Shown: one piece after another, positions 1,820-26,400 of the stretch
Layout: each line of letters opens with the position of its first letter
How positions within the stretch are numbered: position 1 is the first letter of the stretch
Assembly (NCBI GenBank): GCA_964035545.1
Contig: OZ037770.1
Coordinates: 2,108,001 to 2,172,000 of the forward strand
Reading direction: 5' to 3'
DNA length: 64,000 nucleotides
From: Bugula neritina
Taxonomy: Eukaryota > Animalia > Bryozoa
Position numbers and translations under genes: made by a program
Notes under the pieces: generated by a model
What the model was told of the DNA's origin: nothing
The model's input: the letters and a program-made list of their open reading frames with translations, nothing else
Databases searched by the model: none

Positions 1820-2480
1820 TATAATTAATACATATGTAATATAAGTAATCTGTTTTAGCTAAAACAGAAAACAAATAGTTTAATATGTGGATGATTCTAA
1901 CATTAAAACTATAAAAAATAGTGTCTATTTGAAAGAATACTCTCCAAATAGAATGGGCATCAAAACTTACATCGGACTGATATTCCAACTTTTCTTCTTT
2001 CAGTTGCTCCACCTGTAAATTGATAAAACTTGGAGTTACATATGCTCAAAACAGCCTCACATTGTGTGAACTATTTTAAATGTACGATATGCTCACACTA
2101 ACAAAATGGGTGACTACTGAATTTTACTAATCAGATATAAGATCAGCAGTACAAAGTTGCCAAAAAGAAAAGAAAAATATAGTAAGTATAAACAAGTGCA
2201 GTGATAGGTTCATTTTGCAACCATTTCTAATCCTGAAAAAAAGTATGAACTGCAAGAGCATGAGAGCCTGGTAACAGGAGCCTGTGAGTTTAACCTATAA
2301 AAAATATTTTTAAAATATGTTGTTTGCCATTGTGTGTAAAAATTAGAATGCAACAGTTAAAACTTAGCAGATATTGCTGCTTGCAATAAAGCAATTTGGT
2401 GGAGTATAAAGGGGTACCTACACTATTATTTAAGATTACAGCTGAAATTGTTGTAACTATAAAACATGAAAATATTCACA
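1820..2480 (+). repeat. Diverged duplicate of ~16800-17530 (micro-exon plus intron flanks)
   Basis: Collinear shared blocks such as ggcatcaaaacttac, aagtataaacaagtgcagtgataggttcatttt and tgttgtaactataaaacat. Confidence 0.8.
1971..2012 (-). CDS. 42-nt micro-exon 23 [14 protein letters not shown]
   Basis: CAG / GTAAG. Confidence 0.8.
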
Positions 2481-5400
2481 TAAGAAAAATAATCCTTTTT
2501 TAGACATCCGTGATTTTTCCTTCACAATTAGAAGTTGTGTTCTCCCACAAGGAATAGGTTGAGTGTGGAGGTATGTGTCAGAGTTGTCAGAGATAATAAT
2601 CCGAATATGCAATAATTCAATGTTTTTTGTGGGAGTAATAATAAACCGAGTGAGAAAAGCTACATAATAACAGAATTAAATCAAGTTAAAAAACAATACA
2701 GTACTACTTATAGCTAAAAATTCAAAGTTCGAAAGGTAAAAATTTTTTTCATCATCAGCAGGGCAACAACGCTATACCTCTTAAGTACTTGAAAGTTGGC
2801 TGGTAACATGATGTATGGGGCTATTGTTCTAAAAATTAACTTAAAATAGACTCGTAACAAATTTATACTTAAGCACTAACTACTAAAGTCTTGAAATTTA
2901 GGCACCTCATTTATAAAAACTGTGAAATCTCAGCTCAGTCGTCTTGCAAATCTGCTGAACATTGAGAAATAAATGTCATCCGAAATATATTATTCTTACC
3001 TCTTTGTTTGCAGAAGCCGATTGTGTTTGATACTTGATACTCTGTAACAAATTAAACAAATGTAACTGCAGTTTATTGACTTTTCAGAACAAACTAAAAT
3101 ATATACATTCTTTTTACAGTTTTGTGCACTACTAAAGTGATGTATTATTGTATACACGAGCTATTGCTGCATGCTCCACTATGAGGTTATGACAAAAACT
3201 GAAACAGTTGACGTTTATAAAAATATAGCTGTTTTGAAAGTCTAATTAGATACCACTAAAGCACTCAATAGCCAAAAAATAAAATACACATATAGAACAG
3301 TTGTAAAATATTATTCTAGTCTATATAAGACAGTTATCCTGTGACTGAGATTGGGCGCCGGAAGGTTAATACTGATTGGCCAGTAGAAGGTTTCGGTGGT
3401 GTCACCGTATGGAGTGGCGCAGTGCCACAGAGGACTGCGGCATCGCCAACGGAGTTGTAGCCTCTTGAAACTTTATATTGCCTCAACACATAACACAATG
3501 TCACTGCTCTGCTGTAAATATTTATATAGGGGGTACTGGGGAGTATATTTCTCACAGCCAGTACAACCTCCTCCAGCAGAAAGCCAGCTTTTTGATACAA
3601 CCAGAACGTAGGCAAGTATCAGTGTAGAACATTAAAAGCAAAAGAATAAGAAAGATAGAAACAAACTGTTATTAATATAGTGGTACAAAATATTTTGAAA
3701 AACATCTGGCATGAAATCTGGAGCTTCACAGCTATCCCATGTTAAATACACACCCAGCAAATCTGTAACATGTCACTAGATAATACACAGCATAGTTAAG
3801 GTCATCCCCAGTAAAATATCATCTCATAATCTAGTCTCAGTTCCTAGTTGCTATTGTTCTGTGGGCGGCATGCGTATTGCCTACTTGTCATAATTTAGCA
3901 TGAGATTGACCAATTGCCAACAGACCATCAAATTAGCTAGGGCTGCACCTGTTTATATTACAACCATGGCTACATTCTATTGAGCAAGTATGTGGTCATG
4001 GCAAGCCTCAGCATCACCTCATTATTATTATTACAAGAGACCAGTGGTTCGTTTCATGTGCAATGTACTTGATGTACAAAGGAAGATAATTTTCGCAACT
4101 TCTTTTTCAACTAACCATGTAAAACTATTTCAGATTCTAGAAGCAAGCTAAATGCTAAAGCTAACTCAATATTTATCCATTTGCCTAGTCTAATAAAGCT
4201 GTTAATAATTACAGGGTTGACTACAACTTTTGAAATTCTAATGCAGATATTGTTTAATTAATGTAAAAGGCAGCCGTAACAAATAATTTGGAGATGCTCT
4301 TCTCTCAAAGTATAATGTTTTTATGCTAGACTAATAATCCATCTGTTCACTACCATTGACTAACTTGAAGCCAAAATTACCTTCATCATTAAAATCCTCT
4401 TCTAGTTGCAAAAACACTTCTCAGTGCTAAACTATTACAATCAGTTACAGACTCTGCACAATAGATTAGAATAGTAAAGAGACTTGCATATAGGTCAGAT
4501 AGTCATGTGTGAGATTTTGTTGGTAGCTGTAATGATCAGATATGCAGAATTTTGTGTGGCCACTTTGAGTTTAGATGGTTTGGGTAAAGGATTTGATTGC
4601 TGCAAGTTTCTAATATGGCTATAGTAGGTACTTTTGTGGTCCCATTGTACATTAGTATAAGCATTCATCAACACTTATTGAAGTGAGTTGGAACTTGGAA
4701 CTATATAGAAGGTTTATAGACCGTGAGCCTGTGCTTTAAGTATATTCTATTTGCTCTCTGTTGTATACAGTCTAAACTTTGAAAGGCCCAATCAAGCCTA
4801 AATGGCTTCTAACTAAATGTCCAAAAATTGGCTATGAACTGTATCTTGTTGCTTTGCACTGAGAAATAAATTTGAGGCCAGCAAACAACTGAGCTCCTTT
4901 GTATTACTGGCAGCTACTATCAATAGTTGGTTATCATAGCTGCGCGGTGTTCACTCAAGCATGATATCATCGGCTTGCTGTATACTAACTCAGAGCCAAG
5001 ATTATCAACTATTTTATGTTTCTAAATTTAGCATCTAATAGAAAAAGCTGCGTCTAGTTAGACTGACTGACACTATGCTTGCCTGAGTGAAACATCCAAA
5101 ATGAACAGTTTTAATCTTAGCTACGCAAGAATTGAGAATTTCAAGAGAAAACCTCCTTAAGATAAAAGAAGATGTCCAGTGAATTCATTTTTGTTTCCGG
5201 CCTGATAGGTGTCAGTTAATCAGCTCAGATATAACTAGCAATGCATTATCTATTATTTTGATGCTGCAGTTATAATATTCCATAACAAGAATTGACTAAT
5301 TAATAATTTAGGCATATGCAACAAATCAACCAGTTTTATTCAAGTTAACACCAGAGAGCCATTGCTAAAGATCAAAACAAAAATCAGTGTGGATTTTCAA

Positions 5401-23400: not shown

Positions 23401-26400
23401 TTGGCAAAGATTCCTTTCCAATTCGAAACATACAGATTTTGTGTAGTACTTGCCAACTTTTTCTCAGCATCCAGCTCTGCAAGTGTCTTCTTATTCTGAA
23501 AAATTAGACTTTTAGTCATATTTTGCTAAGCCAATCAAAGAAGGCATCAGAGATATACATAGTATCTTCATAAAAACTTTATTGTGCTAAGCCAATTTGA
23601 AGTGATCACAAAAATGTCAAATACATTCATGAGAAAGTTACATCAAAGGAATAGTTGAGACAAATGTTAATGCAAGCACTTTTCATCAATAAGAAAATAA
23701 ATCATGTTTCAATATTACAATAATATATTATAATCAATGTTCAAATAGTTATTTACTGAGCGGAGTAAAAATTCTACTTACTATGCCTTCAAGTTTCTCC
23801 CGCTCTACTTCAAACTTGAATATCTACAAGCAAATATACATATATATATATATATATATATATATATATATATATATATATATATATATATATATATATA
23901 TAAATAAGTATACGAGAAACATTGTTGATTTATTACTTTATTAGGTAAAGTAATTATACTGATATTTCGGGTACCACTGTACCCATCTTCAGAGTAGCAA
24001 TGAATAAAATTCAAAAATTATTATGTTACGTTAGAAGTTATGCATGACACAAAGAGTAGAGAGTGGCAGTTATTGTAAATTATTGAAACTTAGGGAGATA
24101 ATGTTATTTTATATATTACGCAGGTCAAAAATTATACTGATTTTTTTGCATAAAAAATAAATTAGAGTTGACAAAAAAATAGATATCCAAATATAAAAAC
24201 AGCAAGAATTAGTGAAACTATATGAGAGTTGAGTAGTGTGGAGCTATTGATATAGTTTTAGTGGTCATGCATAACGTCTAACGTAACGTAATAATTTTTG
24301 AATTTCATTCATTGCTACTCTGAAGTTGGGTACAGTGATACCCGAAATATCAGTATAATTACTTTACCTAATAAAGTAATAAATCAACAATGTTTCTCGT
24401 ATACTTATTTATAATCAAGCTTCTAGCTCGTAAAGATATATATATATATATATATATATATATATATATATATATATATATATATATATATATATATATA
24501 TATATATATATATATATATATATATATATATATATATATATATATATATATATATATATATATATATATATATATATATATATATATATATATATATATA
24601 TATATATATATATATATATATATATATGCTTGCATGTATAATAATATAAACCTTTTCATCCAGCTCCTTTATTTTTATTTGAGCTGCTTCTTTCTGCTGT
24701 CTCTCTCTCTCTTTAAGCACTTCATTTTCTCTTTCAATATCAGCCTTGACCTTCTCTCTATAATTACTCAGTTGCAGTCTCAAAGACTCATCAATGTGAT
24801 TGTCCAGTGCAGCTAAATATTTTCTAAAATATACTATGTAGAATTAGGTTGTTTATGTTTTACAATGACATAAAATCATTACAGCGATCTACTACAAATA
24901 AGCTATCTAAAAACCTATATAAGCTTCAACAATTGACTAGAGTTAGAAGTTTTGCATACTAAAAATAAATACGTCTTTTTCAAATAAGCTTCGAAATTTA
25001 TGAATTTTCTAACGACAGGAAAAACAAATTCGTTAGCTTTCAAAACATTTTGTATTAAAAACTCTGTCTTCCATAATAACTTTAAGCTTTTCAAGTTTTA
25101 AATTATACATATTGTAAAGATTTGTGTTTCTATCAGCAGAAGTACGGCACAATTCCGATGCTGCATTCTGCTACATTAGCATACGCATTAGCATTAGCAT
25201 ATGATGCACCACCCTACGCTATATCCTATTGTATATATATATATATATATATATATATATATATGTATATATATATATATATGTATATATGTGTATATAT
25301 GTGTATATATATGTATATATATACATATATATACATATATGTATATATATACATATATATACGTATATATATATATATATATATATATATATATATATAT
25401 ATATATATATATATATATATATATATATATATATATATATATATATATATATATACATATATATACATATATATATATATGAGTCAGTTTACTTCATTTA
25501 GTACACACCAGCAACTTATGACCTAACATTAAAGTTTGCTCAAAATCAATTGAAATTCACTATACATGGTATTTTAATGTGCTGGTTTCAACTACGCATA
25601 ACAGAAAAGGCTGGGAGGGGATTCCCCAACATTAAAGCACAGGTCATTGTCATATGCACTTAATATTTTATATGTGCGACCGTTACGAAAAAAACCGTAA
25701 CGGTCCATAACCAAAACTAGCTGAATAGTTAGGGAAAAACATGGGAAATGAAGAGAAATTAAAAAGAACTTTGATTATTTAGATGTATTTATTGGTGTTT
25801 TACTAGTTTTGGCCAAAAAACCATGTTTATTACCAGTTAAATTGTGAAAAATAGCCAAAAACTGAAGATATCCAGTGTGTACTAAATTAAGTCAAATGAC
25901 CCATATATATATATATATATATATATATATATATATATATATATATATATATATATATATATATATATATATATATATATATATATATATATATATATAT
26001 ATATATATATATATATATATATATATATATATATATATATATATATATATATGTATATCTGTTATATATGTTATCTGTTATATATATATATATATAGGTA
26101 TATATATATATATATATATATATATATATATATATATATATATATATATATATATATATATATATATATATATATATATATGTATGTATATCTGTTATAT
26201 ATGTTATCTGTTATTCAGGAGAATTTTTAGCAAAAACCTTTATAGATGAAGTGGTCTTTTGCAGAAATTGTATTTCAAGCTTACAATTTAAATGAAAACT
26301 GGTCAATTGCCTTAAGAATACAATCATCAGCCTTGAAGACAATTGTAGGTGAAAATATATGTATTCAACATGTGCCATTTAGAGGTAAGGGCCAATTTTT

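Follow-up and report, generated by a model that had tools for sequence, protein, structure and literature searches.

A stretch of the genome of the bryozoan Bugula neritina carries, on one strand, a long succession of short open segments of identical length, which raises the question of whether these are exons of a single gene and what kind of protein such a gene would encode. The window, meaning the whole stretch that was analysed, comprises 64,000 nucleotides (nt) of contig OZ037770.1 in a 216-Mb assembly, and is referred to here as C6:2108001-2172000; coordinates prefixed C6 belong to this same contig, while those without a prefix are counted within the window. Scanning was extended beyond the window by 120 kb on the low-coordinate side and by 20 kb on the other. 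The locus is ~88% identical to host contigs in two JGI metagenomes. Its DNA is AT-rich, the gene's own parts having 23-37% GC; (TA)n and (TG)n tracts are numerous in it, and it includes some mobile elements that are GC-rich. The reading developed below, to which we assign a probability of roughly 0.8, is that the locus holds a real gene for a GTPase of the GBP/atlastin class with a very long coiled-coil tail, the tail being encoded by ~52 phase-0 exons of 42 nt, each specifying two heptads. It appears to be one large minus-strand gene of ~90 kb, running from C6:2172331 down to ~2082531, most of which is covered by the window.

Between positions 1971 and 23823 the minus strand contains 24 exon-like segments, each of exactly 42 nt and all open in phase 0. 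Each is preceded by AG and a T-rich tract and followed by a GT[AG] donor, with a sole GC donor at 23454-23495 (GCAAGT), and the encoded peptides are rich in K, E, Q and L. An initial annotation, made from the letters of the window, had described at least 23 such segments with one GC donor among them. The exact length, the AG and GT boundaries, the phase and the single GC donor all held on closer analysis; the number in the window had to be raised to 24, and the array does not end at 1971. The exons are listed below in the order of transcription, the basis for each being its flanking AG and GT (GC in exon 2) and its phase-0 open frame.

23782-23823, minus strand: 42-nt exon 1, AG / GTAAGT, with a copy in the paralogue
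23454-23495, minus strand: 42-nt exon 2, GC donor GCAAGT, the paralogue copy having GTAAGT
22550-22591, minus strand: 42-nt exon 3, type M, duplicate at 20444
22343-22384, minus strand: 42-nt exon 4, type N, duplicate at 20264
22135-22176, minus strand: 42-nt exon 5, glycine-containing, ends GK, duplicate at 20035
21916-21957, minus strand: 42-nt exon 6, type L, duplicate at 19222
20444-20485, minus strand: 42-nt exon 7, type M
20264-20305, minus strand: 42-nt exon 8, type N
20035-20076, minus strand: 42-nt exon 9, GK type
19222-19263, minus strand: 42-nt exon 10, type L
18904-18945, minus strand: 42-nt exon 11, opens a 13-exon unit repeated downstream
18731-18772, minus strand: 42-nt exon 12
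18528-18569, minus strand: 42-nt exon 13, glycine-containing
18017-18058, minus strand: 42-nt exon 14
16977-17018, minus strand: 42-nt exon 15, type A
16606-16647, minus strand: 42-nt exon 16, type B
15795-15836, minus strand: 42-nt exon 17, GK type
15433-15474, minus strand: 42-nt exon 18
14743-14784, minus strand: 42-nt exon 19
14599-14640, minus strand: 42-nt exon 20, GK type, next intron 96 nt (the equivalent intron is 95-96 nt in four other copies of the exon pair)
14461-14502, minus strand: 42-nt exon 21, type F
13737-13778, minus strand: 42-nt exon 22, type G, weak sites GAAG / GTAAAT common to all copies
3000-3041, minus strand: 42-nt exon 23, type H, preceded by a 10.7-kb intron with a gypsy-type RNase H fragment
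1971-2012, minus strand: 42-nt exon 24, type A, last in the window, the array running on

The bare criterion (AG, 42 nt, GT or GC, no stop in phase 0) is satisfied many times by chance on both strands. A strict scan, requiring a donor consensus and a pyrimidine-rich acceptor, was run for every length from 21 to 99 nt. Over window positions 1900-23900 it found 19 minus-strand segments of 42 nt (Poisson P = 6e-15); other lengths gave a mean of 1.53 and a maximum of 6, and the plus strand gave 3 segments of 42 nt. Over the whole 50-kb array the minus strand had 39, other lengths ~3.5 and the plus strand 3. A single spike thus stands out from all lengths scanned, at 42 nt only and on the minus strand only, and a chance pattern was accordingly rejected as the explanation of the segments. 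A satellite or a transposon-borne repeat was likewise considered and rejected: a search of the rest of the genome found no array DNA outside two tandem genes, with the exception of a ~400-nt dispersed element in one array intron (~14880-15300), present in >30 copies of 80-85% identity on most of the larger contigs.

Past the start of the window the array continues for 25 kb with 28 further exons of 42 nt, as far as C6:2082879, bringing the total to 52. It is bounded by two exons of other lengths.

24652-24823, minus strand: exon of 172 nt (57 codons and one further nt), directly ahead of the array and ending in phase 0, 95% identical to the paralogue without gaps
C6:2082531-2082722, minus strand: terminal exon, acceptor in phase 0, ends in a stop

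Because the 172-nt exon ends on a codon boundary and the terminal exon begins in phase 0, the reading frame is continuous through the array. Array introns range from 95 nt to 10.7 kb (median 601 nt), and the exons have 38% GC vs 29% for the introns. The sequence that follows the array, in the terminal exon, is polar. Ahead of its stop the terminal exon also contains a consensus-like donor, CAG|GTATGC, on the minus strand (L006:4600-4625, C6 ~2082600-2082625), which could serve an alternative 3' end.

The protein encoded by the array was characterised by joining the 52 predicted exons in silico, which gives a tail of 728 residues, an estimated half to two-thirds of the whole protein. All 52 exons are open in phase 0, as compared with 15 in phase +1 and 17 in phase +2. 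Each encodes 14 residues, or two heptads, with strongly hydrophobic residues (LIVMF) at position 1 in 79%, at position 4 in 71% and at position 8 in 56% of the exons (88/75/50% for the 24 in the window). Hydrophobic periodicity is confined to one sharp peak at 3.5 residues, with a power of 11.6, none of 1000 shuffles exceeding 1.16. These heptad statistics indicate that every exon begins at a heptad 'a' position, as the initial annotation had proposed. The tail contains no Pro, no Trp and a single Cys; its major residues are E (16%), K (14%), Q (10%) and L (9%). A coiled coil rises ~0.15 nm per residue, and as a coiled coil the predicted tail would be ~100 nm long.

Composition also bears on a different view of the tail, namely that it is real and stays unpaired, as a single charged helix or as a flexible spacer segmented by glycine-containing exons. 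E, K, R and D together account for ~41% of residues, and the second 'd', position 11, is occupied chiefly by Ala or polar residues. Gly occurs at positions 9 and 13 in 12 of the 52 exons, which end in GK or GE and recur as every third or fourth exon; these may be softer points in the rod. Occupancy of the a/d/a positions by LIVMF is nevertheless phase-locked at the percentages given above, and these positions are more conserved than others, which is unlike the expectation for a single charged helix. We consider an unpaired tail quite improbable and favour a rod that pairs as a coiled coil.

On the other side of the array, upstream in the gene, lie exons with the motifs of a GTPase domain.

C6:2172134-2172331 (L016:134-331), minus strand, 134 nt beyond the window end: GTPase exon 1 (198 nt, phase 0-0), P-loop GAMRSGKS, Pfam GBP 20-48, 19.3 bits
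63773-63910, minus strand: GTPase exon 2 (138 nt, phase 0-0), switch-I, TQGIWMW, Pfam GBP 44-68, 16.2 bits; acceptor TTATAG, donor GTGAGT; paralogue copy 93% identical, gapless
62828-62986, minus strand: GTPase exon 3 (159 nt, phase 0-0), G3 DIQG, Pfam GBP 73-126, 11.8 bits; acceptor TTACAG, donor GTGAGT; paralogue copy 89% identical, gapless
32185-32316, minus strand: GTPase exon 4 (132 nt, phase 0-0), G4 'RD' (LIFLIRDF), Pfam GBP 134-177, 17.2 bits; splice sites read
27947-28963, minus strand: candidate middle-domain exons, open frames 28841-28963, 28252-28431 and 27947-28084

The four GTPase exons are collinear with the N-terminal GBP model of Pfam (PF02263) and between them supply the G1, switch-I, G3 and G4 motifs, so that the attachment of the array to a GBP/atlastin-like GTPase, suggested by the initial annotation, is borne out. 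All four are phase 0-0, and phase-0 introns therefore dominate the resolved parts of the gene and not the array alone. The P-loop motif is also found in the paralogue, and the G motifs are intact in both genes. Among solved structures the best matches to GTPase exon 1 were atlastins, at weak significance (E 0.2-0.5), and none was found for GTPase exon 4. The candidate middle-domain block is 87% identical to the paralogue, one of its frames reaching 93% at the protein level, and a Pfam search with these frames gave no match. A whole-genome search with GBP_C (PF02841) produced no match at the locus. By eye, with no transmembrane or signal-peptide predictor run, neither an atlastin-type membrane hairpin nor a signal peptide was recognised, the N-terminus (which starts MTKVAALPNGEE) being polar and leading straight into the GTPase domain.

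How the array came to its present size can be read in part from its internal repeats. It is a mosaic of duplicated exon-intron blocks, 75-99% identical to one another, with one 13-exon unit present twice. Exon frame and length are kept between duplicates that have diverged by 15-40%. Across five aligned block pairs, 0 indels were observed in exons vs 13.4 expected at the intron rate, and 0 stops were observed vs a mean of 6.1 when the 142 observed substitutions were placed randomly, an outcome of zero occurring in 0.08% of trials (P = 0.0008). The exons are under selection to stay free of indels and stops. Change is less frequent at core positions 1, 4 and 8 than at the remaining positions (0.17 vs 0.29, P = 0.039), and 9 of the 15 core-position changes exchange one hydrophobic residue for another.

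A second source of evidence is a tandem paralogue ~100 kb away, with GTPase exons at C6:2061448-2063764 and an array at C6:2028624-2002589. The window gene has 52 exons of 42 nt, the paralogue 21 intact and 2 dead. The dead copies lie at C6:2025997 and C6:2023196 between intact neighbours; one has been cut to 34 nt by a 5' deletion, while in the other the acceptor AG is changed to AA. No dead copy was found in the window gene, where all 52 exons keep both splice sites. The copy number of 42-nt exons has changed, as the initial annotation had envisaged when it called for exon numbers to be compared between paralogues. Its further claim, that an exon can be lost or gained without disturbing frame or heptad register, also stands: with uniform 42-nt phase-0 units in a fixed register, any gain or loss preserves both. 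Between the two genes, identity reaches 98-99% in some blocks that bear exons but is 81% in adjacent ones. Judged from sequence comparison, this pattern speaks for unequal exchange or gene conversion in the recent past, with the caveat that mobile elements common to both genes make up some of the near-identical blocks.

The genome itself contains ~16 GBP-like loci. Public collections were also searched for relatives of the gene. Among 1.8 billion proteins, a HMMER search with GTPase exon 1 matched nothing but distant GBP-like proteins and short fragments of genomic read-through. When the 57-residue exon (24652-24823) was used in a word search, it retrieved one genomic fragment, from a sibling-species paralogue (P0015) that is 76% identical and whose contig ends 170 nt past the exon. 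A protein search with the open frame spanning the exon at 1971-2012 returned nothing. Metagenomes were also scanned with a 20-nt pattern taken from a conserved exon type; the 11 loci obtained had local matches of only 29-39 nt and were discarded as chance matches.

Several observations weigh against a functional, spliced gene of this design. Searched singly, the GTPase exons all score below 21.1 bits, the Pfam gathering cut-off. Two large protein collections yielded no protein derived from a transcript. The only public sequencing run found (X1), examined over window positions 16850-20650, is DNA, since its contigs continue through introns; they are colinear, with two intronic indel joints and 0 exon-exon joints. 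Ahead of the array, the 172-nt exon is followed by a donor that departs from the consensus (GTTTAT, with GTTAAT in the paralogue). Amino-acid constraint is weak: the ratio of nonsynonymous to synonymous substitution rates (dN/dS) among exons, a comparison that the initial annotation had recommended, is 0.4-0.8 and exceeds 1 in two short sets. Differences by codon position number 41/37/56 (P = 0.11), and the exon substitution rate equals the intron rate in 2 of the 5 blocks.

Taken together, some of these observations would fit an array that is not expressed as predicted, the window gene being a decaying or silenced duplicate whose frames are intact because the duplications are young. The DNA nature of the one run found, the unusual donor and the near-neutral substitution rates in some blocks are all compatible with this, as is the interruption of the GTPase domain, whose exons 3 and 4 are separated by a ~30-kb intron full of mobile elements where the paralogue has ~600 nt. 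The deficits of stops and indels given above speak against decay, as do the splice sites kept in 52 of 52 copies, vs two dead copies in the paralogue, and the intact G motifs of both genes; the non-consensus donor, moreover, is common to both paralogues. We hold decay to be very improbable, and return to the reading of a functional gene. The scarcity of indels and stops together with weak residue constraint indicates that it is length, frame and heptad pattern that are conserved, rather than sequence.

A separate issue is how such an array would be used. The initial annotation had viewed it as a generator of diversity or length, in which 42-nt exons are skipped or chosen combinatorially to yield a ladder of rods within one animal. 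With all exons phase 0-0 and in one heptad register, any subset would be translatable; evolution is fast, and exon death is tolerated in the paralogue. The sole hint of regulated splicing is that weak sites are kept in all copies of some exon types (GAAG/GTAAAT in type G; GTAACT donors in the GK type), and exon definition may compensate for weak sites. Symmetric exons are equally expected from simple tandem exon duplication, and the sequencing run found is, as noted, DNA. Combinatorial use of the array is therefore regarded as unlikely, and we infer instead that the predicted exons are spliced as modelled and mostly included.

On this preferred reading, of constitutive inclusion for the most part, the spliced exons would form one continuous helix of ~730 residues, built of heptad repeats, free of proline and with E, K, Q and L abundant. 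The rod probably pairs as a coiled coil, and the protein may act in the cytosol as a GTP-switched, dimerising long tether or scaffold. On the same reading the array grew as units of several exons, together with their introns, recombined unequally, and its modular 42-nt phase-0 exons both result from and permit unit duplication that keeps frame and register. A more speculative extension, which we think doubtful, would make of the protein a bryozoan 'quantised rod': a GBP/atlastin-type GTPase joined to interchangeable two-heptad exons, its length and surface tuned by unequal crossing-over (among individuals and paralogues) and by exon choice, and serving as an innate-immune or membrane-tethering ruler of variable reach. 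The putative immune role, for which the grounds are only the family name, tandem paralogy and fast evolution, is not supported.

Mobile elements and simple repeats are found at several points along the gene. Within the 30-kb GTPase intron lies a Maverick/polinton-like element (33400-38000, minus strand), with a long polymerase-like open frame (36689-37645), a frame at 35635-35943 with a weak match to adenovirus protease (Peptidase_C5, 17.9 bits, below cut-off), several related frames of ~80-130 residues (34140-35526) and, at 33500-34075, a repetitive, fibre-like one. The AT-rich host DNA also holds two insertions that resemble retroelements and are GC-rich (55-58% GC), at ~38900-45000 and ~54900-60600, with related translations on opposite strands. 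The same 14-residue translation is found at 54975-55016 and again at 60523-60564, suggestive of terminal repeats. The 10.7-kb array intron contains, on the minus strand at 10958-11260, a gypsy-type RNase H fragment (Pfam RT_RNaseH, 57.7 bits); the block around it is 95% identical in the paralogue, and the insertion therefore probably predates the separation of the two copies. Another array intron holds a perfect (TG)250 microsatellite (20687-21186; 500 nt, 100% matches), and long (TA)n tracts are found at 24436-24627, 25232-25480 and 25903-26202.

The locus is of interest on several counts. If splicing is confirmed, growth and shrinkage of a rod by unit duplication would be seen here in progress, with 52 exons vs 21, identity between blocks as high as 99% and two exons only recently dead. 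The gene and its paralogue would offer a natural system for the role of rod length in a GTP-switched tether, and they provide a hard test for gene finders, which overlook arrays of 42-nt exons. A literature search found no published description of heptad-sized exon arrays or of bryozoan GBP-like genes. Several known systems nonetheless share one or another of its properties. With the GBP/atlastin large GTPases of the dynamin superfamily (PF02263) the head has in common the G1 motif GxxxxGKS, the switch-I motif T-x-G-I-W, the G3 motif DxxG and an 'RD' G4 in place of NKxD, although the bryozoan domain is very divergent and lacks a GBP_C match. The helical stalks of GBPs and atlastins are far shorter than a heptad rod of ~730 residues.

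The micro-exon genes (MEGs) of schistosomes, to which the initial annotation had likened the array, have a coding sequence made mostly of short symmetric exons between longer introns, such that skipping keeps the frame; their exons are 3-81 bp, mostly ~15 bp, of mixed lengths and 10-20 per gene, and encode small secreted, schistosome-specific proteins (bioRxiv 10.1101/2023.06.21.545858). The likeness is confined to the symmetric short-exon design and amounts to analogy only. The 52 bryozoan exons are uniform rather than varied in length, encode 728 residues of predicted coiled coil with no signal peptide recognised, and show no homology to MEGs. In the K-domain of plant MIKC-type MADS-box proteins a heptad-repeat helix became longer when a short exon was duplicated (bioRxiv 10.1101/2023.03.15.532791). 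That case involves one duplication, vs ~50 here, and a helix for transcription-factor tetramerisation as opposed to a long rod on a GTPase. The duplicated K-domain exons, too, are 42 bp.

Nebulin and the PEVK region of titin are encoded by repeat-per-exon arrays in which exon number sets protein length, and golgins and EEA1 are rods of ~100 nm that act as tethers coupled to GTPases. None of these is homologous to the bryozoan protein, and golgins and EEA1 work with a GTPase that is a distinct protein, while the bryozoan GTPase and rod are fused. The nearest conceptual relative would seem to be the 54-bp exon rule of the fibrillar collagen genes, in which exons of phase 0 number in the dozens and each spans a whole number of structural repeats, a rule explained by tandem exon duplication that keeps frame and structural register. 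The bryozoan unit differs in being the heptad (2 x 7 residues = 42 nt) and not Gly-X-Y, in having exons all of one length, and in belonging to a protein read as cytosolic with an enzyme head rather than to a secreted fibre. If splicing is confirmed, the array would be a coiled-coil counterpart of the collagen exon rule, in which every exon holds the same whole number of structural repeats.

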